This document shows positions 3,057 to 60,070 of a stretch of DNA of 64,000 bases, piece by piece. A program made the position numbers and the translations under genes. Every line of letters begins with the position of its first letter. The first letter of the stretch is position 1. This DNA is from Octopus bimaculoides (taxonomy: Eukaryota), in NCBI RefSeq assembly GCF_001194135.2, contig NC_068983.1, forward strand, positions 164,227,235 to 164,291,234, written 5' to 3'. A model generated the notes under the pieces. That model saw only the letters and a program-made list of their open reading frames with translations, was not told the DNA's origin and did no database searches.

Positions 3057-4653
3057 CTAAGTTCAATGAAAAACAAAAAAACAAAACAAAGTAAAAACAC
3101 AATTTTCACATAAAGTCAGTCGATCTGTCAGTCTGCTGGTCAGTCAGTCAGTCTCATACACAGGTAGTCTTCATAACTGAATTATCTCTTTGCTTCAGTT
3201 AGCTCACTTATGATTCAGCCACTATTGTTGTTGTTGTTGATATCGTCATCATTTTCATACAAAATTTTCCTTTACATTTTGTTTTTTCACAAGATTTATC
3301 ACAATCAGCAATTTTTTTTTTCCTGTTTTCTGCCTCTCTACATTTTCCTGCAATTGTTATTGTTGCAAACAGAAAAATTATTGATATAAGTATAATATGA
3401 CTGATAAGAATAATATTGATTTACTTTAACCAACCACAACACCAAGGATTGTTTTGTAGGAAGTGAGTAGAATAATGTTTTAGTTTGTTATTCACCAGAG
3501 TAAAGCTGGCAACTCCTATTAACAACCATAGTGAGAAAATCCAAGACAATTTCTAGGTATGTAAGTTTGGTTGTTACGGTCAAAAGACATGTCTCTGGAA
3601 TGTCAGATTTTAAAAACTTTTCATGGCAATTAAATTTATTGACACATACAGCATCTCATGGATTTTCTTATTTTCTTATTCAATAGTTATAAGATGATGA
3701 GAGAGGACTCTCTTCTGAATTGGGTTTCAGAATTCCACAAAATAGATTTTCTAGATGTGGTAGATAGTGCTCACAGCTTGGCAAATTAATACCTGTAGAA
3801 TAACGAGCATTACGTTAAGATATGATGGAATTCATTAATAATTCATCTACAGATAAATAACTTGTTCATTTAATACATTTTCTTTTAATTGAATTAATCA
3901 AACATATTTGTGACATTTATTTAATTTAATGTTTGGAATGATAAAATATAAAATAATTTCAGTTAACATGTGAATTCATACCACTTGCATGTTAAACTAG
4001 TTGCGGAATAGCATTTATTTCGAAATGCTATTCTATAAGACATCTCCACTGTTTTACCAATAGTCAAGTATAAACCAGAAATTGTCCAATATTAGTAAAT
4101 TCTCATGTGCAAGGTGAGCACCGAGAATCATAGTGATGACATACATATTCGTACTTAAAACATTCTTGTAGTTTCAATTGTGAAAATGTTAACCGCTGTT
4201 GTATTTCCTCATTGGCAAATAAAGTTAGATTCATTAGTCCAGAGTAGCTTTGACTGAGGTGTCAATAAGGTTGAAACACCAGTGTCTCAAAGTCTCCTTT
4301 CCTTAATGAATTCTGTGTGTGTTATGAACAATCATTTGCTTGAAAGAAGAAGTTATTTTGTAATGACAAAAGTACAACAGTGATTAGCATCTTCATAATT
4401 AAATCTGCAGGAATGTATAAATGGTTCAATATTAGTCCAATCACTGCTGACCAGGGACTAAAAAAACTACAATTACAAAGATCTCGATCATAAGTCTTCT
4501 CAGTCATAATTCATCTGCAGTTAAACAATTACAGCAACAACAACAACTTTGATCATAAGTCAACTCAGTTCTATATTTAAGAGATGAGGAATTATGTACA
4601 TTATTTACATTATTTACATTTGATGGATATTTGTCCTCATCTTGTTTGTTGAT

Positions 4654-4699
4654 AACACAACGTTTCAGCTGATGTACCCTCCAGCTTTCATCAGGTGTC
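4654..4699 (-). ncRNA. Minimal type-I hammerhead ribozyme motif (family 1)
   Basis: Minus strand: GACAC CTGATGA A AGCTG gagggtacat CAGCT GAAA CGT T GTGTT. Stem I GACAC/GTGTT, 5-bp stem II, palindromic ACGT stem III. Confidence 0.8.
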
Positions 4700-4752
4700 T
4701 TGAGGAAATTTCAAACCTGGGTTCTCATTCCTAAGGTATTTTTTCGATGTTG

Positions 4753-4809
<57 letters not shown>

Positions 4810-4878
4810 TCACTGCTTGGAATTGAACTCAGAATCTTGGGGTCAGTAGCCCACGTTCTTAACTATTACACAGGCATA

Positions 4879-4932
4879 TGGCATAGTGGTTAAGAGTGCG
4901 GGCTACTAACCCCAAGATTCCGAGTTCGATTC
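4879..4932 (+). promoter_or_regulatory. tRNA-like Pol III internal promoter (A and B boxes) at the palindrome centre
   Basis: A box TGGCATAGTGG (4879-4889) and B box GAGTTCGATTC (4922-4932), with GGG-CTACTAA-CCC anticodon-arm-like stem-loop between them. A mirrored head lies on the minus strand just to the left. Confidence 0.7.
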
Positions 4933-4942
4933 CAAGCAGTGA

Positions 4943-5004
<62 letters not shown>

Positions 5005-5051
5005 TCGAAAAATACCTTAGGAATGAGAACCAAGGTTCGAAATTTCTCCAA

Positions 5052-5097
5052 GACACCTGATGAAGGCTGGAGGGTATATCAGCTGAAACATTGTGCT
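5052..5097 (+). ncRNA. Minimal type-I hammerhead motif, CpG-decayed (family 1)
   Basis: GACAC CTGATGA A GGCTG gagggtatat CAGCT GAAA CAT T GTGCT. Core intact; stems II, III and I carry transitions. Confidence 0.7.
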
Positions 5098-5323
5098 AAC
5101 AACAAACAAGATGAGGACAAATATCCATCAAATGTAAATAATGTATAAGTCAACTCAATTATGTATGACCCATAGCTCAAAAACAACACCACCGCCAACA
5201 ACAACAGTTCATTTCAGTTTATGACTTTTTAAATCATGAAATTCAACACTTCAGAAGATGAATCCGTATGTATTCCTGTTCTAATTCTAATGCATTCTTA
5301 TATTCGTTCTGTTCTCTTTTTAG

Positions 5324-7524: not shown

Positions 7525-7822
7525 AGCCCTTTCATGGCGTCTGATGTGGCTTTTTAAACCAGACAATGTTTTGAAAAAACACCCACACAGATTGCACCTC
7601 TGATTTGCACTACCAATACCTGCAGGTAATTTCTGCTCATTGTAGATCCTAACATGTCTTTTAAGACCCTCATTGGATTTGCAAACCCTCTGGCACACAC
7701 CACATTCAAACGTGTGCACAGACATATAATCAGAATAGCTGGTTGAAGTTTGTTTTCCATGGGTTCGCAGGTGAGATTTGAGGCCAGCCAAAGACAGACA
7801 TGGTCTGTCACAGACTGTGCAC

Positions 7823-7864
<42 letters not shown>

Positions 7865-8040
7865 CTGTGCATATCTTTTGATGCAATGTATGCCAGAAAG
7901 ACTGCGAATCTAATGGAGGCCTCAAAAAGAAATTTTAGATCCACAAAGATCAGAACTTATCTACAACTCTTGGTGGTCCAGATCGGATATGCAATCTGTG
8001 TGGATGTCTGGAAGTGATCAAACTCAGCATGAAGAACAGA
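7525..8040 (-). mobile_element. Three C2H2 zinc fingers, probably the C-terminus of a decayed RTE-type LINE ORF
   Basis: CTVCDRPCLSLAGLKSHLRTH, CGVCQRVCKSNEGLKRHVRIY and CNLCGCFFKTLSGLKSHIRRH. No TGEKP linkers; upstream part interrupted by (CA)n; truncated by a gap. Confidence 0.55.
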
Positions 8041-9612: not shown

Positions 9613-9785
9613 AGGTGTGGTTGTGTGGTAAGAAGTTTGATTCCCAAACCCCTGGTCCTGGGTTCAGTTCAACTGTTTGTCACCTGGGTCCCCTGGGGCA
9701 AGTGTCTTCTACTTATAACCTTAGGCTGACCAAACCCTTGTGAGTGGATTTGGAAGATGGAAACTGAGAGAAGTCAATCGTATAT
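9613..9785 (+). mobile_element. 5' part of CORE-type SINE
   Basis: Same head as 1059-1220. Confidence 0.75.
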
Positions 9786-9814
9786 ATATATTTATTTATA
9801 TATATATAAGTTAG

Positions 9815-10864
9815 TTTTTGTTTGTGGCAGATGTTCAGGTGCAATAAAGACTGCAAACAAACAGGAAACAACTTCTATCTCATTCCAGGGTGAACAACTA
9901 GAGGTAGTCGATAGCTTCCGCTATCTGGGCGACCAAGTTAGTAGTGGGGGTGGGTGCGCTGAAAGTGTAGCTGCTAGAATAAGAATAGCCTTGGCAAAGT
10001 TTAGAGAGCTCTTACCCCTGCTGGCGACAAAGGGACTCTCACTCAGAGTAAAAGGCAGACTGTATGACGCATGCGTACGAACAACCATGCTACATGGCAG
10101 TGAAACATGGGCTGTAANNNNNNNNNNNNNNNNNNNNNNNNNNNNNNNNNNNNNNNNNNNNNNNNNNNNNNNNNNNNNNNNNNNNNNNNNNNNNNNNNNN
10201 NNNNNNNNNNNNNNNNNNNNNNNNNNNNNNNNNNNNNNNNNNNNNNNNNNNNNNNNNNNNNNNNNNNNNNNNNNNNNNNNNNNNNNNNNNNNNNNNNNNN
10301 NNNNNNNNNNNNNNNNNNNNNNNNNNNNNNNNNNNNNNNNNNNNNNNNNNNNNNNNNNNNNNNNNNNNNNNNNNNNNNNNNNNNNNNNNNNNNNNNNNNN
10401 NNNNNNNNNNNNNNNNNNNNNNNNNNNNNNNNNNNNNNNNNNNNNNNNNNNNNNNNNNNNNNNNNNNNNNNNNNNNNNNNNNNNNNNNNNNNNNNNNNNN
10501 NNNNNNNNNNNNNNNNNNNNNNNNNNNNNNNNNNNNNNNNNNNNNNNNNNNNNNNNNNNNNNNNNNNNNNNNNNNNNNNNNNNNNNNNNNNNNNNNNNNN
10601 NNNNNNNNNNNNNNNNNNNNNNNNNNNNNNNNNNNNNNNNNNNNNNNNNNNNNNNNNNNNNNNNNNNNNNNNNNNNNNNNNNNNNNNNNNNNNNNNNNNN
10701 NNNNNNNNNNNNNNNNNNNNNNNNNNNNNNNNNNNNNNNNNNNNNNNNNNNNNNNNNNNNNNNNNNNNNNNNNNNNNNNNNNNNNNNNNNNNNNNNNNNN
10801 NNNNNNNNNNNNNNNNNNNNNNNNNATGGAAAGCGGACGTTAAACGATGATGATGATGATGATG
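9815..10864 (+). mobile_element. RTE-clade LINE 3' fragment (RT C-terminus, gap, ATG tail)
   Basis: LEVVDSFRYLGDQVSSGGGCAESVAARIRIALAKFRELLPLL...LYDACVRTTMLHGSETW; ends gcggacgttaaacgatgatgat. Confidence 0.9.
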
Positions 10865-10896
<32 letters not shown>

Positions 10897-10968
10897 ATAT
10901 AAATCATAGAGTGTGTACTTTTGAGTCTGTATGTCTCCTGTCACTACTTGTCAACTGTTGTTGGTGTA

Positions 10969-11227
10969 GAGTAAAGATTATTTGCCAACATAACATGGCA
11001 GTCCTGGTTTAGGACGAATGTTGCTGTAATTTAGCCCCAGAAGACATCATCTTCAGCTGGCTATACAACATGATCTGAGTGGGGGTGCTAGATTCCCTTG
11101 TTCAAAAATGTAAGGACACAGATCATGCCGAATAGCCAGCTGGAGACGATGTCTCCTGGGGATAAATTACAGCAACATTCGTCCTAAACCAGGACTGCCA
11201 TGTTATGTTGACAAATAATCTTTACTC
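10969..11227. mobile_element. Fold-back MITE, ~120-bp near-perfect arms
   Basis: gagtaaagattatttgccaacataacatggcagtcctgg... mirrored by ...ccaggactgccatgttatgttgacaaataatctttactc. A second, single-arm copy lies at ~52172-52295. Confidence 0.85.
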
Positions 11228-11479
11228 CAAAGTACTGTTGCTGATATCTCACGGTGTGAGATTTAAAAATAGTAATTTTCTAATGTTTACAAGATGCTTT
11301 TCAATTGGAAATGTATCCTTGAATGCTTACAACACACTAGGGGAGTGCTAAATAAACCCCGGGAACTAGGTTTTGGGACGTTTACTCATCAATTAGGTCA
11401 AGGCAAGATTTAAACTCAGCTCATGAAGAACTGGAATGAATACTATAAGGTATTCAGTCTATGATGTCTTTCATCTTTT

Positions 11480-21035: not shown

Positions 21036-21617
21036 TTAAAATCTGTTTTCCATGCTGCCATGGTCCTTGACAGTCTGGCAGAGGGGCTGGTGAGGCCAGG
21101 AGTCACATCAGGCTCCAGTTGTCTGGCTTGGCTTGGTTTATACAGAGTGGACAGAATGCTTTCTTCATGGCACCAACACAAAGGCATTTATATTCATGGC
21201 ACCAGCATGAGTGTTCTATATGCTGAACCAGTACGAGTGCTTTTTACTTGGCTCCAGCCCAGGTGTTTTCATCAATAATAAAAATAAGAATCAAACAAGA
21301 AAATTGCAGCCAAGCTCGGTCTGCATGATAGTGGTGTCAGACGTGGCATTCAGACAATCATAGAACTGGTTAGACATTTGCCTTGCATTTTTAATCTTCC
21401 ATTTTATTTTGACATACGCATTGCGTTTTTATATTTTTCTTCCATTTTACCAATCTACTCTGCACGTGCAAATTGCCTCTTCATATGTTTCTTTCTGTTT
21501 CCTACTCAAAACTGTTTATATGTCACAACCATCACAACCATCTCACAAACTGGCATTTGTGAAGAGTGCTTTGCACCCTGATGTGAAGAAAAGAAATTAA
21601 TCAACATTTATTGCATT

Positions 21618-21910
21618 TCTATATTTAAGAGATGAGGAATTAAGTATATTATTTACATTTGACATAGTGGTTAAGAGCACGGGCTACTAACCCCAACATT
21701 CTGAGTTCGATTCCAGACAGTGACCTTAATAATAATAAGAATAATAATCATAATAATGTAATAACGAATTGAACTCGGAATCTTGGGGTTAGAAGCCTGA
21801 GCTCTTAACCACTAAGCCATATGCCCATGGGCAATTATGGAGTGAATTTTTAGGGCTTATAAACCTAATACTTTCTTATCCTTCCAAGTTTGATTCCAGG
21901 CAGTGACCTA

Positions 21911-21957
<47 letters not shown>

Positions 21958-21980
21958 TGATAATGATGATGATAATAATA
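21618..21980. mobile_element. Rearranged family 1 copy without the hammerhead segment
   Basis: Tail (minus), head (+), (AAT)n, head (minus), then a partial head (+) and (AAT)n. No CTGATGA or GAAA core. Confidence 0.7.
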
Positions 21981-22019
21981 ACATCACAGTCTAAGGAAGA
22001 TTAACCGAGAAGATAGCTT

Positions 22020-22940
22020 TCGTGTGCGGCAGATGCACAGGGGCAATAAACACCACAGATGCTCAGAAAACAGATTCCATCACACTCCAGGGGGAGAAAC
22101 TAGAAGTAGTTGATAGCTTCTGCTACCTAGGTGACCAAGTTAGCAGTGGGGGATGGGATGCTCTGAGAGTGTTACCACTAGAATAAGAATAGCCTGGACA
22201 AAGTTTAGAAAGCTTCTACCCGTACAGGTGACAAAGGGCCTCTTGCTCAGAGTGAAAGGTAGATTGTACGATGCATGTGTGTAAACTGCTATGCTTCATG
22301 ACAGTGAAATGTTGGACATAAGAAGCATCGGATGTGGCGTGCAAGAGAGACATTTGCGCTGGTATGGTCAAGTATTACGGATGGATGAGGAGAACTGTGT
22401 GAATCCGGGGTAGAGGGAGACCCAGGAAGACATGGGATGAGGTGGTGAAGCTTGACCTTTGAACGTTGGGCCTCACAGAGGCAATGACGAAAGACNNNNN
22501 NNNNNCTTGACCTTTGAACGTTGGGCCTCACAGAGGCAATGACGAAAGACCGAGACCTCTGGAGATATGCTGTGACTGCGAAGACCCGGCAAATAAAGTG
22601 AAGACCTGCAATAAAGTGAGTTCACGGGTGTATCCTACACCAGTTTTGCATAACCAGCCCCAGCCCATTCAAAAGTACCTTGGATCGTAGGGTGACCTGC
22701 TGTGCTTGAGGAGACCTATTGAGTCAAGTACATCAACATGAAAATGAAAATCAAATGGAAATTGCAGTTGTGATACCCATGCCGATGGCATTTAAAAGAG
22801 CACCCACTACACACTCGGAGTGGTTGGCATTAGGAAGGGCATCCAGCTGCAGAAACACTGCCAGATAAGATTGGAGCCTGGTGCAGCCATCTGGTTCGCC
22901 AGTCCTCAGTCAAATCGTTCAACCCATGCTAGCATGTATA
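22020..22940 (+). mobile_element. Degenerate, internally deleted RTE LINE 3' end
   Basis: Homologous to 9815-10117 (LEVVDSFCYLGDQVS...) and to 54120-54830. Confidence 0.85.
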
Positions 22941-24775: not shown

Positions 24776-27070
24776 CTGCAAATATAATTCAGAAATAAGA
24801 AAAATATATTACAGCATTGAAATAGGTTTTGTGTTGGTGTGATGATGGGAAGCTGTTTAAATTTAGCATGAAAGAAAATAATAGTGAGGTTGAAGTATTG
24901 AGACACTGACTAAATAATCATGAATACAAGCTAGCTTTATCTCTTGTTGTCTTCTTGTATCATTGGGGATTATAAAAAAACGGATTATTATATCCCTGGG
25001 GATTATACATAAGTCTGCTTGTTTCAGATTTTCTTTTCTAGTGGTAGACATCGGATATATTGGTAATTCGTTGTGGGTTGGTTTGCTATAAAGAGGGGTG
25101 TCAAGTTCTGGTGGCTTGAAGAAAATGTAAATTATTTGCATGTGCAAACTCCATCTCAGTTATACGAACAGCAGAAAAATAAACGTGAGCAATAGATTAA
25201 ATACAGAGGTATTTGCATGTGTGTGTGTGTACATACATGTAAAACATGGAAAAACTTTCCAGAAGTTTAGCATTATAAGTCCATAAGCACACGTATCGAT
25301 ATGAAACTATAGGTATGGGCAAACATATATATATATATATATATATATGGAAGAAAACGTAAAGAATTGCACATGCACTGGTGCAAATGCTTGCATGTAG
25401 ACACATATACATGTGCACCTGCCCTGTTGGTTTTGTTGTATTTCCAATGAAGGTGTCTTGGAGCTGAGAAACTAATTCTATGTTGGTAAGAAATCCAGAA
25501 ATGAATCTAAATGATTATATAAATACTTAAACACTCATTCATACATATTCTCACTCCTGTACACACTCATTCATGTATACACATACATACATACACCCAT
25601 ATGTACACACATACATACATATATGCATGCATACAGGCATACATACATACATACATACGCAAAAGAGAAAGTTAATCCGAAGACTTCAGATCCAATCCCT
25701 GACTGAAACTGCAAAAAATCTGTAAAACTTTCTAGAAGTTTATCATTACATAAGAGCATGTCTAGATATGTAACGATATGCATGAGAATACATCCATAAA
25801 ACATACAAATCTGCACATACATACATGCATACATACATACATGCATACATACATACATACATGCATGCATACATAATTTTAAATGAAAGAGGCCATGCGT
25901 ACATACATGTAAAAAAAAATTTGTAAAACCTTCTGAAACTTAACCTGTAAGTCCACATGCACATGTATAGACATGGAACTAGATGTGAGTATTCATGCAT
26001 AAAACATACAGATCTGCACACATGCATTGCAGTGATGCCAAACACCTGCACATATACACACATGCATGCACATCTGCCCTGTTGATGTTTTTGAAATTCC
26101 ATTGAAGGAGTCTTAGATCTAAGTTAGAAAATAACCATTTCTCCATTGGCGAAATATCAAGAAATAAAACTAAACAACAGCATTCCTATATATTTATACA
26201 GATGATCGATGAGTGCAGTCACATGTTTGGCATAGCAGACTATTCTTTGAATACACAATGGATACCATCTTAAGTGTGTTAATGCAACAAGTATCAGCCT
26301 GGTTAAATAAATGGTTAGTCTTCCGATAATATTCAGCAGAGAAACTTTTTATTCAAAATCGTGTGGATATTCATCCTTAACATGGATTTACCAAGCAGGC
26401 ATCTGCTATGAACATCTTGATGAGAAGTGAATTGACAACCATGAACGCTTTTATTGAGAAAGGTATATAAAATTCTTTAGGTTGTAGCTACAACAGAAAG
26501 AATCGTTAGCTATAAAATACATTTTTCTTGCATTAATGAAGCCAGTAATGAGCTACTTAATTGCTATAAAATGGCAAAAGAAGATTCCTTTGTTAGGGTT
26601 TTGAAAAGAATGAAATGATGCTGGAGAAGGCTGCATCCAGAACTAAAATATTTTATGACAAAAGGAAAGTCGGTTATGATAATTTTTCTTGATAAATATT
26701 TTTAATGCAAAAGTTGTAAATACTGTACAAAAAAACCCCTCAAAGTTATTCTCCTAAATAAGACATGCCTTGAATAACAATCCTGGCCCTCACTGCTGTA
26801 CTATGCTGTCTCACTCAGTCTGGTTGACATTGGTGCTTTACCATTTTGTAAGCAAGCTTGATGTTCACAATAAGTTGTCTGTCAACCCTAATGGAAACAA
26901 CAACAACAACAGCAAAAGAGAGACAACAAGATGGAAGAGAAAAGTGTATAAACATTTAAAGTGAAATCTTTCAAGAGAAGATCCCTGCATTTTTATTCCC
27001 CACTCCCATCCACCCATCATTGCAAACCACTGCATCTGTCTTGTCGTCACTGTCATTATCATGTAATTCT

Positions 27071-27300
27071 TCTATTTGTTTCAGTCATTTGACTGCGGCC
27101 GTGCTGGAGCACCGCCTTTTTAGTTGAACAAATCGACCCTAGGACTTATTCATTGTCAGCCTAGTACTTATTCTATCGGTAACTTTTTGCTGAACTGCTA
27201 AGTTACGGGGGAACTAAACACACCAACATCTATTGTCAAGTGATGGTGGGGGGACAAACACAGACTCACAAACATATACATACATACATACATATATATA
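27071..27300 (-). mobile_element. 3' half of CORE-type SINE
   Basis: Reverse complement of the 1290-1490 block. Confidence 0.8.
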
Positions 27301-27309
27301 TATATATAC

Positions 27310-27468
27310 ATCATTTACATTATTTACATTATTTATATTTGACGGATATTTGTCCCCATCTTGTTTGTTGTTAACACAATGTTTCAGCTGATATACCCTC
27401 CAGCCTTCGTCAGGTGTCTTGGGGAAATTTCGAACCTAAGTTCTCATTCCTAAGGTATTTTTCGATGA

Positions 27469-27523
<55 letters not shown>

Positions 27524-27672
27524 TATTCAGGTCACTGCCTGGCATCAAACTCGGAATCTTGGAGTTAGTAACCAGTACGCCATATGCCCACGAACACATG
27601 GCGTAGTGGTTAAGAGCATGGGCTACTGACCCAAGATTCTGAGTTCAATTCCAAGCAGTGACTTTAAAAATT

Positions 27673-27703
<31 letters not shown>

Positions 27704-27770
27704 TGAAAGATACCTTAGGAATGAGAACCCAGGTTCAAAATTTCCGCAAGACACTTGATGAAGGCTGGAG

Positions 27771-27775
<5 letters not shown>
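27310..27775. mobile_element. Second palindromic copy of family 1; right arm truncated at (TA)n and a gap
   Basis: Head-to-head tRNA-like heads around 27580-27610. Left arm has a hammerhead with CTGACGA core (27373-27418, minus). Right arm core reads TTGATGA. Confidence 0.8.
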
Positions 27776-27827: not shown

Positions 27828-28300
27828 TGTCTGTGTTTGTCCCCCCACACCATTGCTTGACAACCGATGTTGGTGTGTTTATGTCCCTGTAATAGTACTA
27901 GGTTTACAAAGAATAACTGCTGGGCTTGATTTGTTTGACTAAAGGCAGTGCTCCCACATGGCCACAGTCAAATGACTGAAACAAGTAAAAGAATAAAGGA
28001 ATATACACATCATCATCATCATCATTTAACATCCGCTTTCCATGCTGGCATGGGTTGGATGGTTTGACTGAGGACTGGCAAGCCAGAAGGCTGCACGAGG
28101 GCCAGTCAGGTGGTACTGGCATTGGCTATGCTCAAATGGTGCTTTTTATGTGCCAACTGCACAGGAGCCAGTCTGGTGGCACTGGCAACGACCACTCTCA
28201 AATGGTGCTTTTTTTACGTACCACCAGCACGGGAGCCCTTCCTAACATACCAACCCCTTTACAGAGTGTGTTGGGTGCTCTTAGTTGGCACTGCATCGGC
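27828..28300. mobile_element. CORE-SINE 3' part (+, to ~28000) abutting an RTE-tail element (minus, 28008-28300)
   Basis: Homology to other copies in the window. Confidence 0.75.
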
Positions 28301-31598: not shown

Positions 31599-32295
31599 GT
31601 GCGTGTGTTTGTGTGTTTGTGTGTTTGTGTGTGTCCCCTACCCAACAGCTTGACAATTGGTGTTGGTGTGTTTCTGTTCCCATAACTTGGCAGCTCAGCA
31701 AAAGAGATCAATCGAAGAAGTAACAGGCTTAAGAAAAGAAAAATAAGTGCTGGGGTCGATTCAGTCAACTAAAATCTCTCAGGGCAGTGCTCCAGCATGG
31801 CCGCAGTCTTATGAGTGAAACAAGTAAAAAATAAAAGACGAAAGATAAAAAAAATAGAAGATATATTAATTAATTTGCTTGTTAGCATCGGTTTCTTGAG
31901 TACATCTATAATTATTTTCTTAGGAGTGGCTGCATTGCACCTTGGGCAAGTGTCTTCTACTATAGCCTCGGGCCGACCAAAGCCTCGTGAGTGGATTTGG
32001 TAGATGGAAACTGAAAGAAGCCCGTTGTGTATATATATGTGTGTGCATGTGTGTATGTGTGTGTGTGTGTGCGTGTGTGTGTGCGTGTGTGTGTGTGTGG
32101 GTGTGTGTGTGTGTGTGTGTGTGTGTGCCTGTGTTTGTTCCCCCCCACCCCACACTGATGCTGGTGTGTCTATGCCCGACAGAATAAGTAATAAGCTTAC
32201 AAAGAATAAGTCCTGGGGTCGATTTGTTTGGCTAAAAGGCAGTGCTCCAGCATGACCGCAGTCAAATGACTAAAATAAGCGAAAGAATAAAAGAA
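31405..32295 (+). mobile_element. Two tandem CORE-type SINEs (31405-31830 and ~31924-32295)
   Basis: Homology to 1059-1495. Confidence 0.85.
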
Positions 32296-38194: not shown

Positions 38195-38835
38195 GTTTGG
38201 AGCCTGGTGTAGCCATCTGGTTCACCAGTCCTCAGTCAAATCGTCCAACCCATGCTCGCATGGAAAGTGGACATTAAACGATGATGAGGAGGAGGAGGAT
38301 GTGTGTTAACATTTCTTCACCACTGGACACTAAACACAGCTTGCGAAGATCTGTTGGGGCAAATGAGATCGAAACTGAACCAAATTCAATGACTGGCACC
38401 CGTGCCAGTGGTGCGCTAACAGCACCATCCGAGTGGGATCACTGCCAGAGCAGCTGTCTTGCTTCCATTCCGGTGGCACATAAAATGCACTATTTGAGCG
38501 CGATCGTTTCCAGCTTTGCCTTACTGGCACTCATGCCAGTGGCATGTGAACAAAACATTGGACTGTCTCCTGTGCAGGTGGCACGTAAAGAAACACCATT
38601 TGAGCGTGGCCATTGTCAGTACCGCTGGACTGGCCCTCATGCCGGTGGCACGTAAAAAGCACCCACTGCACTCTCGGAGTGGTTAGCGTTAGGAAGGGCA
38701 TTCAGCTGTAGAAACTCTGCCAGATCAGATTGGAGTCTGGTGTAGCCATCTGGTTCGCCAGTCCCCAGTCAAATCGTCCAACCCATGCTAGCATGCAAAG
38801 CAGACGTTAAATGATGATGATGATGATGATGATGA
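38195..38835 (+). mobile_element. Two RTE-tail elements (38195-38300 and ~38370-38835)
   Basis: Shared tail and ~65-bp units. Confidence 0.85.
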
Positions 38836-39154: not shown

Positions 39155-39370
39155 TCATCATCATCATCGCTTAACGTCCGCTTTCCATGCTAGCATGGGT
39201 TGGACGATTTGGTTGAGGACTGGCGAACCGGATGGCTACACCAGGCTCCAATCTGATCTGGCAGAGTTTCTACAGCTGGATACCCTTCCTAACGCCAACT
39301 ACTCCGTGAGTGTAGTGGGTGCTTTTATGTGCCACCGGCACGAGGGCCAGTCCAGCGGTACTGGCAACAA
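39155..39370 (-). mobile_element. RTE-tail element
   Basis: (CAT)n followed by the shared tail. Confidence 0.85.
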
Positions 39371-43614: not shown

Positions 43615-44220
43615 TATTCGTCTGCTTGTTTCACTCATTGGACTGTGGTCATGCTGGGGCACTGCCTTGGAAAACTTTTAGTCAAACAAATTGATTCCAG
43701 TGCACTTTTTTTAAAGCCTGGTATGCATTCTGTTGTTCTCTTTTGCTGAACCACTAAGTTACTGAGACATAAACAAACCGACCCCGGTTGTCAAGCAGTA
43801 GTGGGGGACAGACACTGACACAAAGACACACACACACACTCATGGATGGGCAAAATAGTTCAAGGCAGCAAGCTGGCAGAAAGTTTAGCATACTGGGCGA
43901 AATGCTCAGCGGTATTTCATCTGCCGTTATGTCCTGAGTTCAAATTCCACTGAAATTTGCATGCCGGTGGCATGTAAAAAGCACCATCCAAATGGGGTCG
44001 ATGCCAGTGTTGTCTGACTGGCTCCTGTACTGGTGGTATGTAAAAAGCACTCACTACATTCTCCAAGTGGTTGGCATTAGGAAGGGCAACCAGCTGTAGA
44101 AACCTTGCCAGATCAGATTGGAGCCTGGTGCAGCCTCCTGGCTTGCCAGTCCTCAGTTAAACCATCCAACCCATGCCAGCATGGAAAGCAGACGTTAAAC
44201 GATGACGATGATGATGATGG
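43615..44220. mobile_element. SINE cluster: CORE 3' half (minus), Meta-like head (+), RTE-tail element (+, 43955-44220)
   Basis: Homology to other copies in the window. Confidence 0.8.
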
Positions 44221-47320: not shown

Positions 47321-47479
47321 CATGCTGGCATGGGTTGTTTTTGACAGGGTATTCACTCTTCCCCTACCTGAAGACACTTTCTTCAGATGGACTCACCACA
47401 CACACACATCTCCCCCATATACCCCATCTGAATTTCCTGCCAGCAAATTTGGTTTGGCATCAATCATTCTCACCATCTA

Positions 47480-47585
47480 TACACCTCCCACGGGCATATG
47501 GTGTAGTGGTTAAGGGAACAGGCTACTAACCCCAACATTCTGACTTCAATTCCAGGCAGTGACCTGAATAATAATAATAATGATG

Positions 47586-47649
<64 letters not shown>

Positions 47650-47835
47650 TAATAATAATAACAATAACATCAAAAAATACCTTAGGAATGAGAACCCAGG
47701 TTCGAAATATCCCCAAGACACCTGATGACGGCTGGAGGGTATATCAGCCGAAACGTTGTGTTAACAACAAACAAGATGAGGACAAGTATCCGTCAAATGT
47801 AAATAATGTAAATAATATAAATAATGTATACAACT
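47480..47835 (+). mobile_element. Single arm of the tRNA-headed hammerhead element (family 1)
   Basis: Same head, (AAT)n and body as 4870-5144. Confidence 0.85.
47717..47762 (+). ncRNA. Intact minimal type-I hammerhead ribozyme motif (family 1)
   Basis: GACAC CTGATGA C GGCTG gagggtatat CAGCC GAAA CGT T GTGTT. G10.1-C11.1 pair intact, ACGT stem III, GUU triplet. Confidence 0.85.
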
Positions 47836-48297
47836 CCTGTCACCATCAAAATGTCTAATGCTGCTGTATCAATAAAATACACTGAGTGCATTTTATTGCA
47901 GCACCAACATTAAAAACTGTAGGGGCCAAGAGATAGCCCTTAGTCTTGTTGAGGGCATGATATTCCCTTAGGGGTTTATCATGCTATTGTGAGTATATTT
48001 TTTAAACTAGTTGGCACAGGGGAGTGTGTTGCGCAGCTGGGAGAAGACCAAAAATGGAGGTTATTAGTGAGATCGTATTCTTTCAGACATTTAATGAGAA
48101 CAGCAGCAACCCCCCATCCCCATGCACGGATGGGTAGAGCAGGATGTAGAACAATAATGATGGTGATGATTATGATGTTGATAATGTGGACGGTAATGAT
48201 GATGATGGCAATAATGATGGTGGTGATAATGATATTGACGTTGATGACATCAGTGACAACGACAATGCTGATGACCATGACAATGATGATGACGGCA

Positions 48298-50297: not shown

Positions 50298-51204
50298 TCA
50301 GCTAGACAGCAGAGACTTTATTTGTCTAGAGTGGAACACTGAAGTAATATCCTGTTGAAATGTCCATTCCTGTAATGATTCCACCACACAAAAAGAAATG
50401 ATAGAGGAAGAGATTCCTCCCTTACATTTTCTAATGAGAAAATCCTGAACATCCCCACGTGACTTGGACTAACTGATTACGATAAGAACCAAGTGACCTA
50501 ACAGGAGTGTAACTGATGGTGTTAGCTCAATGTGTGTTGGTTTAATAGTTGGCAGTTGAACATTGAAGACTATCGTACCAATATTTGAGTTGTACAGAGG
50601 GCATTCTGTGTTAACATATGTTTCTGTGATACGTTATTTTTAGACAACCACAACCAACTATTTATTTGTATAATAGCATTTTAAACCAGACGTGTATACC
50701 CACATCATAACAAATTTGACAGTTCCACATTTCGTTTTTTAAATGACTGTAAATAAGCTTAGTACACAATTTGTAATATCATGTGTTTCAGGATTAGCTG
50801 ACGAATGCAGTTGTGGTTCCATGCAGTTCCTGAAGGGAACAGTTGAAATGCAACAGAATTATAAATAAACTGATTAAGATTTTACAGTTTATTATTGTTT
50901 CAGTTATTATTAATTAATTATCTTTATCAATTATGAAGCACATTGGCTAAGAAATTAACGAATGTATTATGCTTGACTACATTGTTATAAACTTAATTCT
51001 TACTTCAGTGCTGTAATGTAAGGTAGATAACTCTAGTCACCCCAATTTACCTTAAAGAAATAGTTTCCCATTTAAAATTCTTTTTTTCTTTCTTATCTCA
51101 GTCATTTGACTGTGGTCATGCTGGAGCACCAGGAAGGACTTTCAGCAATAAAAAGAATTGTTAAAAAAATAAAGCAATATCCTAGAAAATGAATATATTT
51201 TATC

Positions 51205-51590
51205 TCTTTTTTTTTTTTTACTTGTTTCATTCATTGGAGTGTGGCCATGCTGGGGCTCTACCTTGAAGGGTATAGTTGAACAAATTTATTCTAGTCCTTA
51301 TTTTTGATCTGGCACTTATTCTGTCCATCTCATTTGCCAGACTGCTAGGTTATGTGAATATAGGAAAATTCAACACTGGTTGTCAAATACAAAGGCATGC
51401 ATGCACACACACACACACACACACGTGAGAGGCTTCCACACAGTTTCCACCTGCCAAATCCATTCAGAAGGTATTGTTCAGTTTAGGGTTATAGTAGAAG
51501 GCACTTGCTCAAAGTACTGTATGATAGGACTGAACTCAAAAACACAGAGTTACAAAGCAAGCTTCTTAACCACACAGCCATGCCAACCAC
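51205..51590 (-). mobile_element. Diverged full-length CORE-type SINE
   Basis: Reverse-complement homology to 1059-1495. Confidence 0.7.
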
Positions 51591-52920: not shown

Positions 52921-54119
52921 CTTAATGATGGCCTTAATTACAGGTGTTAAATATTACCAGATTGGTATGAAGGTTCACATTTGTTTAGAAGGAAAGGTAT
53001 ATTGATTGCACCTATACAATGTCTCATATTTGTAAAAGGATACAAGAGATATAAAATTAATTAATTTCATTACAAGTTTTAATAAGCTTTATGTCAGAAA
53101 GATTCTGGACTTCCAAATGAGAGATTGATAGCTTTTATTTCATTTCCAGGATTATATTCCACAGATAGTTGAGAAATGGATAGGAATGAATTGCTTTAGG
53201 AATAGTTGCAGCATTCCTGCATAGTTGCTGAGTCAGTTGGTTGTGGCTGAAGTTGACTTGCGAATGAAGAACACAACCAAAAATGACTGGGATGAACAAA
53301 GCATCTCATTGATGAGGTTGTGAATGGCAATGAAATGACTTTGACAAACCTGAGTGATCAACAGATTGACCAATTGACTGAACGGTTAATCAATTAATTA
53401 ATTAGTCAAATATTCAGCCAGTAGACAAATAAGTAATAAAGAGGTGAAATAGAACTTGTGTGTGTGTTTTACTAGCATAATGACCCTCCTGAGTTACACC
53501 AAAAAACAGAATAGTTTACATGTTTGAGGAATTACCTGTCATTCAGCTTTCAGGTGCGAAGCAAGGATAATGTTCACTGAAGCAATTTAAGTCAAACAAA
53601 ATTTGGTATCTTACTCCGAAGAACAACACTTTGGAAACAGAATCACTACCATAAAATCAAACAGCCATTTTGTCTCTCAGTCATAATAACTGATTGAGTA
53701 AACCAACAACCAGATATTATTTCAAACAAGACCTACATATCTCAGTGTGTTATCTCTAATGTGTCCTTCTCTGAAAGTGGCAGGATGTATTACAGCAAGT
53801 AGATTTGGCTGCTCTTTCTTGCAGATTAAATGTCACCCTAATATCTCTTGTTGGCTCATTTGGTCCTTATTAATGACTTGTAGGGACACCATATTTCGTT
53901 ATGCCACCATAATATGTTACAAAGTATATCAAACGTTTTTATAAGTCAATACTGTGTTCTACTGTGTTAGCAGTGTTATTACACCACTTGTTAAGGTTAT
54001 CTCTATAGATTTTCTACGGAGAACACAGTTGAACGTGGTATTAACTTATAAAAACATTTAATATACTTTGTAGGATATGGTTGCATAACGAAATACCGTA
54101 TCCATACGGGTCATTAATA

Positions 54120-54830
54120 TTTACTGCGTTGGTATGGCCATGTACAGCAGATGGATGAGAGCTGTGTGAAGAAGTATCACACCCTAACAGCGGAGGGAAC
54201 CTGTGGAAGAGGTAGACCCAGGAAGACATCGGATGAGGTGGTGAAGCATGACCTTCGAATGCTGGGCCTCACAGAGACAATGACAAAAGACAGACACCTC
54301 TGGAGGTATGCTGTGACTGAGAGGACCCAGCAAATAAAGTGAGTCCACAGCTGTAACCTACACCAGTGTCACATAACCAGCCCACTCAAAAGTACCTTGG
54401 ATTGTCCTTGAGGAGACCTATTGAGTCAAGTACATTAACATCAGCAACATCAAAATCAAATCAAATGGAAATTGTAGTTGTGACCCCTGTGCAGGTAACA
54501 CGTAAAAAACACCATCTGAATGTGGCCGATGCCAGTGCTGCTTTGGCTGGCTTCCATGCCGGTGGCATGTAAAAAGCACCGTCTGATCATATGTCAATGC
54601 CAGCTCCTCTGGCCCTTGTGCTGGTGGTACATAAAAAGCACCCACTACACTCTCGGAGTGGTTGGCGTTAGGAAGGGTATCTAGCTGTAGAAACACTGCC
54701 AGATCAAATTGGAGCCTGGTGTAGCCATCTGGTTCGCTAGTCCTCAATCAAACCATCCAACCCATGCCAGCATGGAAAGCGGACGTTGAATAATGATGAT
54801 GATGATGATGACTACTACAATGATGACAAT
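54120..54830 (+). mobile_element. RTE LINE 3' end (ORF end, 3' UTR with tandem units, ATG tail)
   Basis: WYGHV...DESCVKKYHTLTAEGTCGRGRPRKTSDEVVKHDL...WRYAV*, followed by the shared tail. Confidence 0.9.
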
Positions 54831-59539: not shown

Positions 59540-60070
59540 CGTCATCATCATCATTATCATCATCATCATCATCATCATCGTCGTCATCGTCATCGCTTAA
59601 CATCTGTTTTCCATGTTGGCATGGGTTGGACGATTTGACTGAAAATTGGCGACCCAGAAGGCTGCACCAGGCTCCAATCCGATCTGGCAGAGTTTCTACA
59701 GCTGGATGCCCTTCCTAACACCAACCACTCTGAGAGTGTAGTGGATGCTTTTATGTGCCACCGGCATGAGGGTCAGTCAGGTGATACTGGCAACGACCAC
59801 GCTCAAAAGGTGCTTTTTACGTGCCACCTGCATGGGAGCCAGTCCGGCAGCACTGACGATGACCACACTCAAATGATGTTTTTCACATGCTACTGGTACA
59901 TGTGCCAGCAAGGCGATGCTGGCAACGATCACACTCGAACAGTGCTTTGTATGTGCCACTGGCATAGGAGCCAATCAGCAGCCCTGGCAACGATCATGCT
60001 GGGATGGTGCCTTTTATGTATCACCAGCAAGGGAGCCAATCAGCAGCCCTGGTGCATTAAACGTTCCACT
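59540..60070 (-). mobile_element. RTE-tail element with several tandem units
   Basis: Shared tail; repeated ggcaacgatca and ggagccaatc units. Confidence 0.85.

Follow-up and report, generated by a model that had tools for sequence, protein, structure and literature searches.

Which enzymes inserted the short palindromic repeat found at positions 4555–5157 of a 64,000-nucleotide stretch of the Octopus bimaculoides genome (contig NC_068983.1)? Short interspersed elements (SINEs) are defined as parasites of long interspersed elements (LINEs), and we know of no SINE class in repeat classifications that has a Penelope-like element (PLE) as its partner. The sequence-only reading of the locus had proposed such a partnership, i.e. 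a non-autonomous element transcribed by RNA polymerase III (Pol III), processed by its own hammerhead ribozyme and copied by a Penelope-type reverse transcriptase (RT) and endonuclease. Following a comparison of the copies in the whole stretch, hereafter the window (35% G+C, CpG observed/expected 0.38, 3211 N, values indicative of a eukaryotic draft assembly), with bona fide PLE insertions, we consider it probable that the repeat is a SINE variant mobilised by a PLE. It would then represent a family of non-autonomous retroposons in which a Pol III head is combined with a PLE-type 3′ module.

The focal insertion

The insert covers positions 4568–5144 (577 bp) and is a head-to-head inverted dimer of a short O. 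bimaculoides repeat. Its inverted arms (4606–4868 and 4884–5145) are 92–93% complementary. An (AAT)n microsatellite is present in both, at 4757–4805 in the left arm (minus strand, i.e. ATT on the plus strand) and at 4947–5001 in the right arm (plus strand), in agreement with the arrangement originally read from the sequence. A perfect 13-bp target-site duplication (TSD), ATAAGTCAACTCA, abuts the insert at both ends, with the left copy at 4555–4567 and the right copy at 5145–5157. As had been claimed, this single duplication brackets the whole 577 bp; the individual arms have none of their own. The focal dimer is the product of one insertion event. Together with the left TSD copy, the left flank belongs to a diverged direct repeat with a period of 65 nt (4470–4504 versus 4535–4569, 74% over 35 nt), and this local repeat has no effect on the TSD call.

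Read in the sense direction, each arm consists of a Pol III head, (AAT)n, a 3′ module of about 145 nt, a hairpin and (AAATAATGT)n, and the arms of the family are about 270–340 nt long. Alignment of the copies places the left-arm 3′ module at 4598–4752 (minus strand), with its 5′ body ATACCTTAGGAATGAGAAC at 4721–4739, the hairpin GATGAGGACAAATATCCATC at 4622–4641 and two perfect AAATAATGT units at 4598–4615. The right-arm module (5001–5144, plus strand; hairpin at 5110–5129) is tail-less and terminates at the end of one AAATAATGT unit (5136–5144). Among the copies, the number of these 9-nt units on the 3′ side of the hairpin varies from one to three.

The left arm, i.e. the inverted and 5′-truncated one, continues into a 30-nt tail (4568–4597, minus strand; sense ACATAATTCCTCATCTCTTAAATATAGAAC) that the right arm lacks, as the sequence-only reading had noted. 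Because the same tail recurs at 21617–21650 and also in P0001, a protein model of O. bimaculoides (...VHNSSSLKYR), it is attributed to the element itself and not to target DNA. The tail segment TCCTCATCT has a complement, AGATGAGGA, some 45 nt upstream. Moreover, TCCTCATCT(C)TT of the tail (4568–4597) has complements in the 3′ hairpin region (AAGATGAGGA, 4630–4645) and, with a looser match, where the module begins (TTAGGAATGAGAA, 4721–4739). A comparable relation is seen in one of the PLE controls described below (L002, 3495–3530), where the outer tail end CGATATAGA is complementary to the terminal TCATATCG of the arm. Taken together, the complementarity in the octopus element and in L002 hints at a snap-back step in the origin of the tail.

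Alignment of the copies showed that the focal arms have diverged by 7–11% through private substitutions and a 3-nt deletion, and two of the private substitutions are C–G to T–G/C–A changes as expected of CpG decay. This divergence, in which no private substitutions are shared, could be taken to reflect two independent insertions, the second copy having landed by chance against the 5′ end of an older one in the opposite orientation. Such a history is hard to reconcile with one perfect 13-bp duplication around the pair and none per arm, or with 5′ ends that meet within a few nucleotides. As the arrangement is moreover found at three of the four family loci and in none of the 27 copies of two other repeat families (see below), we regard a chance juxtaposition as very improbable.

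A similarly slight probability is given to an assembly artefact or a DNA-level inverted duplication by replication fold-back. The window stems from a gapped short-read assembly with the above-mentioned 3211 N, for assemblies of this kind PLE-type repeats are a known source of error (PMC8557442), and inverted copies of another repeat flank the second palindromic copy of the family. Still, a fold-back chimera predicts identical arms, and assembly fold-back is excluded for the focal dimer because its arms differ at 7–11% through private substitutions. Neither a TSD nor a one-sided tail is a product of such artefacts. Around the second palindromic copy, the mutual similarity of the flanking repeats does not exceed their similarity to the remaining members of their family, and the symmetry stops at their ends.

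Further copies of the family

Four loci of the SINE family were found within the 64-kb window. At the second palindromic locus, denoted copy B, the left arm (27310–27591, minus strand) is 5′-complete and tail-less and ends in a TA/ATAC microsatellite; its hammerhead comprises CUGACGA at 27407–27413 and GAAACATT at 27378–27385. The right arm (27596–27775, plus strand) is 5′-truncated by about 7 nt and enters (TA)n and an assembly gap within the hammerhead. The third locus, c47 (47489–47826, plus strand), is a single-arm, full-length and tail-less copy with an 11-bp TSD (TATACACCTCC at 47478–47488 and TATACAACTCC at 47827–47837), and carries the best preserved hammerhead (47717–47762, plus strand), with both G10.1–C11.1 and ACGU. 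The fourth is a complex locus at 21617–21987 with two head-to-head junctions. The first joins an inverted 47-nt 3′ fragment with tail (21617–21664, minus strand) to a head with (AAT)n (21665–21764, plus strand), the second an inverted head (21766–21830, minus strand) to a copy with a decayed head (21831–21987, plus strand). Copy B lies in (TA)n, a setting that would fit the bias of PLEs for microsatellites, but the focal copy and c47 are located in unique sequence.

In total, four head-to-head junctions are present at three of the four family loci, compared with none among the 19 and eight copies, respectively, of two other window repeat families, Y and X, of which Y served as a negative control for head-to-head pairing. 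As the junction sequences differ between the palindromic loci, each dimer arose at insertion and was not copied from a palindromic master. The tail sits on an inverted piece at two loci, namely on the focal left arm and on the 47-nt fragment at 21617–21664.

The copies also bear on a foldback or miniature inverted-repeat transposable element (MITE) type of DNA transposon, whose long terminal inverted repeats the arms would be. A palindromic unit with flanking direct repeats is what such a transposon would look like. However, a single-arm copy with an 11-bp duplication of its own exists (47478–47837), the duplications are not of fixed length (13 and 11 bp), and the ends are asymmetric, with a tail on one side and 9-mers that vary in number. 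The inner junctions also vary by locus, and the Pol III boxes and the microsatellite confer a retroposon-like polarity. A DNA transposon is thereby rendered highly improbable.

Matches outside the window were found with a peptide translated from the open frame of the 3′ module, which aligns to O. bimaculoides records at 81–87% identity. The above-mentioned P0001 is a 51-aa “uncharacterized protein” model that represents a SINE copy including the tail. In P0003, a 94-aa model of dystrobrevin beta isoform X1, the N-terminus is an exonised SINE copy with head and body fragments spliced together. A more diverged copy of the 3′ module (67% peptide identity) was identified at positions 36–215 of L001, from the independent run SRR11869385. 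It has a mutated hammerhead core (CUAAUGA, ACAU) and a tail-like extension (…TTCGTCCACAATTTGTATTCTTTAAGTAGTAG), and since this diverged copy carries such an extension, family and tail extend beyond the present assembly.

Comparison with PLE insertions

Insertions of endonuclease-positive PLEs are described as having a TSD, an inverted and 5′-truncated copy in head-to-head orientation, a 30–40-bp tail at one end, and hammerheads in the terminal repeats (PMC8557442, PMC3846280). Four PLE loci from a protein search, picked only by cluster size and length of the contig, were used as controls. All four have a TSD of 10–12 bp and an inverted, more 5′-truncated upstream copy; a tail of 28–36 nt sits on the inverted truncated copy only, and the hammerhead cleavage site is located 46–56 nt from the tail-less 3′ end (again in 4/4). 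Individually, the TSD, the tail and the distance from hammerhead to tail-less 3′ end amount to 12 bp, 34 nt and 54 nt in L003; 11 bp, ~28 nt and ~53 nt in L002; 11 bp, ~36 nt and 46 nt in L004; and 10 bp, 32 nt and 56 nt in L005. In the octopus focal element the TSD has 13 bp, the tail, which sits on the arm shortened by ~12 nt, has 30 nt, and the distance is 52 nt (right, tail-less arm). Measured to the same boundary, the hammerhead is 61 nt away in the focal left arm and 69 nt away in c47; the octopus distances differ because the number of 9-mers differs.

On the strength of these sequence comparisons, PLE-type integration of the octopus SINE is well supported. The proposal that the element was copied by a Penelope-type RT/endonuclease draws strong support from the TSD, the truncated inverted copy, the one-sided tail, and the design and distance of the hammerhead. 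The accompanying description of PLEs, according to which the inverted copy lacks the tail, is reversed or ambiguous, as the tail is found on the inverted copy in 4/4 controls.

The design of the hammerhead is likewise common to all four controls and comprises CUGANGA (UUGACAA in L005), an extra A, a G...C helix II, GAAA, the palindromic CG/GC, and U and C. The UUGACAA core of L005 is the U3–A8 covariant of Cervera & de la Peña 2014. In L002, the right arm has GAAATGT and the left arm GAAACGT, a difference of the same type as ACGT versus ACAT in the octopus element.

The hammerhead motif

An intact minimal type-I hammerhead is located in the left arm (4654–4699, minus strand), as judged by descriptor, covariance model and fold. 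It consists of helix I (GACAC/GUGUU), CUGAUGA (4688–4694), an unpaired A, helix II and GAAA-CG-U-U (4659–4666). The self-complementary ACGT lies inside GAAACGTT (4659–4666), and cleavage is predicted after 4659. The right arm holds a decayed version (5052–5097, plus strand), with CUGAUGA at 5057–5063 and GAAACATT at 5085–5092, in which ACGU has changed to ACAU (C–G to C–A, of the CpG-decay type) and helix I is mismatched and weakened (GUGCU). Thus, of the earlier claim that each arm has a minimal type-I hammerhead with an ACGT stem III, the CUGAUGA...GAAA core stands for both focal arms, whereas ACGT is present in the left arm only and reads ACAT in the right. Decay of the core is seen in c27 and L001 as well as in the right arm of the focal copy, and other copies differ where CpG decay would act (CAGCCG to CAGCTG, ACGT to ACAT).

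In c47 and the focal left arm the core positions C3 U4 G5 A6 N7 G8 A9, G12 A13 A14, A15.1, U16.1 and H17 (= U) are in place, together with a 5-bp helix I and a 5–6-bp helix II preceded by one unpaired nucleotide (after A9). Helix III of the best-kept copies is the self-complementary ACGU only (palindromic C15.2–G16.2). G10.1–C11.1 is retained only in c47, with A–U in the focal left arm. The emergent features listed by Cervera & de la Peña for the minimal hammerheads of PLEs are the same traits (PMC4209133). An apparent covariation of the closing pair of helix II (G–U, A–U, G–C) was down-weighted, as G–C is likely ancestral, G–U would be expected from CpG decay and A–U stems from one copy.

A literature-based descriptor of the minimal hammerhead gave two matches in the window, one in the focal left arm and one at 47722–47757, compared with 0 in 300 dinucleotide shuffles. 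Helices I and II are present in the minimum-free-energy fold. As a non-circular test, a covariance model (R1) was trained solely on the hammerheads of the four bona fide PLE loci and run over the whole window with filters off. The family sites ranked 1st, 3rd, 4th and joint 5th, with scores of 17.7, 16.1, 14.8 and 12.1 bits (the tie being at 12.1 bits); the best score in the window, 17.7 bits, belongs to c47, the focal left arm reached 16.1 bits and the right arm 12.1 bits. The second-best match (16.6 bits) is a degenerate hammerhead-like motif at 5016–5053, directly upstream of the real one, which reads ..GGAAUGA-GAACC..GGUUC-GAAAUUUC.. and is found at the same position in other family copies. 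This motif may be what is left of a duplicated ribozyme or simply due to chance. Exact-pattern hammerhead scans of metagenome, viral and prokaryotic collections returned 0 matches.

What the hammerhead would do for the SINE is a separate matter. Processing of the element by its own ribozyme, as had been suggested, is unsupported, and the cleavage geometry does not fit. The predicted cleavage site is situated 52–91 nt upstream of the 3′ end, so that cleavage would detach the promoter-bearing head from the 3′ end that serves for priming, and any read-through flank could not be removed by hammerhead cleavage. Since the two hammerheads of a palindromic copy are on opposite strands, they cannot pair in one transcript; as helix III consists of ACGU only, the predicted cleavage would need a dimer of two RNA molecules. 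Most likely, the hammerhead is kept as part of a module recognised by the enzyme or is a vestige of a PLE end. A role as a device that matures the SINE RNA is unlikely.

Heads and Pol III promoter

The right head (4869–4949, plus strand) is 5′-complete, starts with CACAGGCATATGG and agrees in its 5′ end with the copies c47, c21b and c27L. A search pattern combining both boxes places an A box, TGGCATAGTGG, at 4879–4889 and a B box, GAGTTCGATTCC, at 4922–4933 (both plus strand). The left head (4803–4868, minus strand) is, according to the copy alignment, 5′-truncated by about 12 nt; its A box is lost and a B-box-like GAGTTCAATTCC remains at 4819–4830. The back-to-back heads that had been described as having A and B boxes are therefore complete on the right side only. 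The combined A-box and B-box pattern has three matches in the window, all of them in this SINE family, compared with 0.03 expected from shuffles.

The label “tRNA-like” is based on the A and B boxes and on the distance between them. No tRNA was detected by ARAGORN in the window or in the family consensus, and the Rfam tRNA model had no match in the window, even at E ≤ 10. The head may resemble tRNA-Ser. Rfam matches to MIR4414 and MIR2600 were discarded, as they merely reflect the hairpin formed by the two focal heads.

TTTT is absent from the sense strand of both focal arms, in accordance with what had been reported, and the first such run is 60–100 nt away on the far side of the 3′ end. As T4 does not occur internally, Pol III could read through the whole element. 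The focal element has no open reading frame (ORF) of its own, and in particular no RT or GIY-YIG ORF. With its A and B boxes, the lack of an internal T4 and the lack of an own ORF, a Pol III-transcribed, non-autonomous element is plausible.

Search for a partner element

The identity of the partner was addressed in the window and in protein collections. No PLE coding remnants were detected in the window, neither with a motif regular expression nor with a hidden Markov model of 60 PLE proteins searched against the six-frame translation. A protein search with a PLE consensus yielded 5602 PLE proteins; of the 120 listed, none was labelled octopus. When one of the LINE fragments of the window served as query, the matches were confined to UniRef entries and short contigs, and there was no octopus PLE among them. 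BLAST of the arms against the window retrieved copies of their own family only. The idea that the 3′ module is the C-terminal coding end of a PLE ORF was rejected, as the real frames score below shuffles; at the protein level, the module shows no similarity to PLE C-termini. In the consensus, one frame of the module stays open over 60 codons. Still, octopus genomes do contain PLEs that have been active recently (PMC13282606, PMC8967140), so that a PLE partner can exist.

Several points weigh against mobilisation by a PLE. No octopus element with RT and GIY-YIG domains that shares the 3′ module was found in the window and protein searches, and there are no head-to-tail tandem (pseudo-long terminal repeat, pseudo-LTR) copies of the SINE family in the window. 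The 3′ hairpin and the one to three copies of the 9-nt repeat are absent from all four PLE controls. The comparison relies on four family loci only, the hammerhead descriptor was written after the sequence had been seen, and the E-values of R1 are marginal and rough (0.007–0.5). Finally, Rfam reported no hammerhead in the window, at the gathering threshold or at E ≤ 10; as Rfam likewise misses the hammerheads of all four PLE control loci, this last negative is uninformative.

These observations invite an alternative assignment to an ordinary LINE-dependent tRNA-SINE with a CR1/L2/Rex-type partner, whose dimers would be due to twin priming and whose hammerhead-like motif would be incidental. 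A hairpin followed by short tandem repeats is a classic SINE tail shared with CR1/L2-type LINEs. The hairpin GATGAGGACAAATATCCATC with one to three AAATAATGT units is typical of “stringent” LINE/SINE tails (PMC4758252). LINE RT fragments do exist in the window, and the window and protein searches yielded no PLE partner. Conversely, none of the window LINE fragments shares the 3′ module, and a full hammerhead core with PLE-specific extras, which a PLE-only model picks out, is not expected by chance. A one-sided tail of about 30 nt on the truncated inverted arm is reported as unobserved in LINE target-primed reverse transcription (PMC8557442), and the LINE-related family Y has no head-to-head pair among its 19 copies. 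On balance, a LINE partner is considered unlikely, albeit less so than the alternatives discussed above, and mobilisation of the SINE by a PLE is retained as the probable explanation.

In a mechanism of this kind, transcription by Pol III would start at the head and read through (AAU)n and the 3′ module. A PLE RT/GIY-YIG nickase acting in trans would recognise the ~145-nt 3′ module and introduce staggered nicks about 11–13 bp apart, giving rise to the 11–13-bp duplication. Reverse transcription would then be primed on both sides of the break, or would involve a template switch, as in PLE insertions. The expected outcome would be one full-length, tail-less copy and a head-to-head inverted, more 5′-truncated copy that retains the 30-nt tail.

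Relation to known elements

The closest parallels are the endonuclease-positive PLEs (Penelope/Poseidon, Neptune; Craig et al. 2021, PMC8557442; Arkhipova et al. 2013, PMC3846280), with which the octopus SINE shares a minimal type-I hammerhead about 50 nt from the 3′ end. Also in common are the extra nucleotide after A9, G10.1–C11.1 and the palindromic 15.2–16.2 pair, as well as the inverted, more 5′-truncated head-to-head copy with its one-sided tail (28–36 nt) and a TSD of 10–13 bp. Unlike PLEs, the octopus SINE has no RT/GIY-YIG ORF, starts with a Pol III head and (AAT)n at its 5′ end, shows no head-to-tail pseudo-LTR tandems, and ends in a variable 9-nt 3′ repeat that the controls lack.

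Schistosome SMα/Sj-α elements (Ferbeyre et al. 1998, via PMC6765202 and PMC8490949) are, according to these descriptions, also short and non-coding, with a Pol III promoter and a downstream type-I hammerhead. In both systems, cleavage splits the promoter from the downstream part, a prediction in the case of the octopus element. Compared by description, SMα has a canonical hammerhead, often occurs in tandem arrays and self-cleaves in vitro, whereas the octopus SINE has a minimal PLE-type hammerhead and dispersed copies, often as inverted dimers. A PLE-type insertion anatomy is not reported for SMα in these descriptions.

Metazoan non-LTR retrozymes (Cervera & de la Peña 2020, PMC7229834; Li et al. 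2026, preprint 10.64898/2026.07.22.740005) are likewise non-autonomous animal repeats with hammerheads, for which an origin from PLE pseudo-LTRs and the use of PLE enzymes have been proposed in the same sources. They form head-to-tail tandems of 170–400 nt and circular RNAs, and a tRNA-type head is undescribed. The octopus SINE, in contrast, has no tandem copies in the window, does have a Pol III head, and its dimer hammerheads are on opposite strands. The non-autonomous Chlamys PLEs, e.g. MRC1 of Chlamydomonas (PMC8557442), are short, non-coding and trans-mobilised, with only the 3′ end in common with an autonomous PLE, but they differ from the octopus SINE in having pseudo-LTRs and head-to-tail arrays, no canonical hammerheads and no Pol III head.

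LINE-dependent tRNA SINEs (eel UnaSINE/UnaL2; mollusc SINEs, PMC4758252; octopus OK/OR1/OR2, Ohshima & Okada 1994) have the A/B-box head, the body and the 3′ hairpin with tandem repeats, and also share variable-length TSDs and a high copy number. As a class, these elements are described with neither a hammerhead nor a one-sided tail nor the head-to-head dimers that are frequent in the octopus SINE. Full-text literature searches returned no description of a tRNA-headed, hammerhead-bearing or PLE-dependent SINE in cephalopods. As described, none of the precedents SMα, retrozymes and Chlamys PLEs joins a tRNA-type head, a minimal PLE hammerhead and the PLE insertion signature.

SINEs dominate the repeat content of octopus genomes; in Octopus vulgaris they account for about a tenth of the genome, for the most part without classification (PMC13282606). 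A wider claim can be put forward tentatively, namely that octopus genomes may hold a SINE class driven by a PLE RT/GIY-YIG nickase and not by a LINE; at present we would sooner doubt than accept it in this generality. If true, it would be the first SINE–PLE partnership defined by insertion anatomy, and the driver of octopus SINEs bears on how octopus genomes expanded. The mechanism of PLE integration is itself unexplained, and no accepted model accounts for its inverted copies, its dimeric hammerheads or a tail on one side only (PMC8557442). A short, abundant and naturally marked substrate would then be at hand for working out how priming proceeds from two sides, where the tail comes from and what the dimeric hammerhead does. 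By the same token, the ~145-nt 3′ module would be sufficient in cis, and thousands of small natural insertion events would be available for analysis. If the family is already in Repbase/Dfam under another label, its value is that of a well-documented example.

Other repeats in the window

Family X comprises copies of about 245 nt that start with ATTCTTCTATTTGTTTCAGTCATTTGACTGCGGCC... and end in a (CA)n/(TA)n microsatellite. They are located at 27066–27308 (plus strand), 27829–27994 (minus strand), 1300–1494, 31618–31829, 32176–32278, 43616–43822, 51083–51130 and 51213–51302. Two X copies lie tail to tail, and the second palindromic SINE dimer is found inside the (TA)n tract between them. Copy B as the centre of a larger DNA palindrome was considered and rejected, as the flanking X copies are ordinary family members.

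Family Y has 19 copies that end in (GAT)n, e.g. at 38480–38812 (plus strand), 39171–39367 (minus strand), 54486–54791 (plus strand) and 59597–59952 (minus strand). At 54118–54800, its 3′ region follows a LINE RT C-terminal fragment (LRWYGHVQQMDE...RGRPRKT...), and family Y looks like an ordinary SINE/LINE pair with a common tail. LINE RT C-terminal fragments are found at 9757–10116, 21995–22183 and 54118–54339; several are interrupted by gaps, and they lack the SINE 3′ module sequence. A fragment of a C2H2 zinc-finger ORF at 7525–7956 (minus strand) is unrelated to the SINE 3′ module. Finally, a MITE-like palindromic element of about 265 bp, without relation to the SINE, is located at 10966–11230; its 112-nt arms are 92% complementary and enclose a 35-nt centre.

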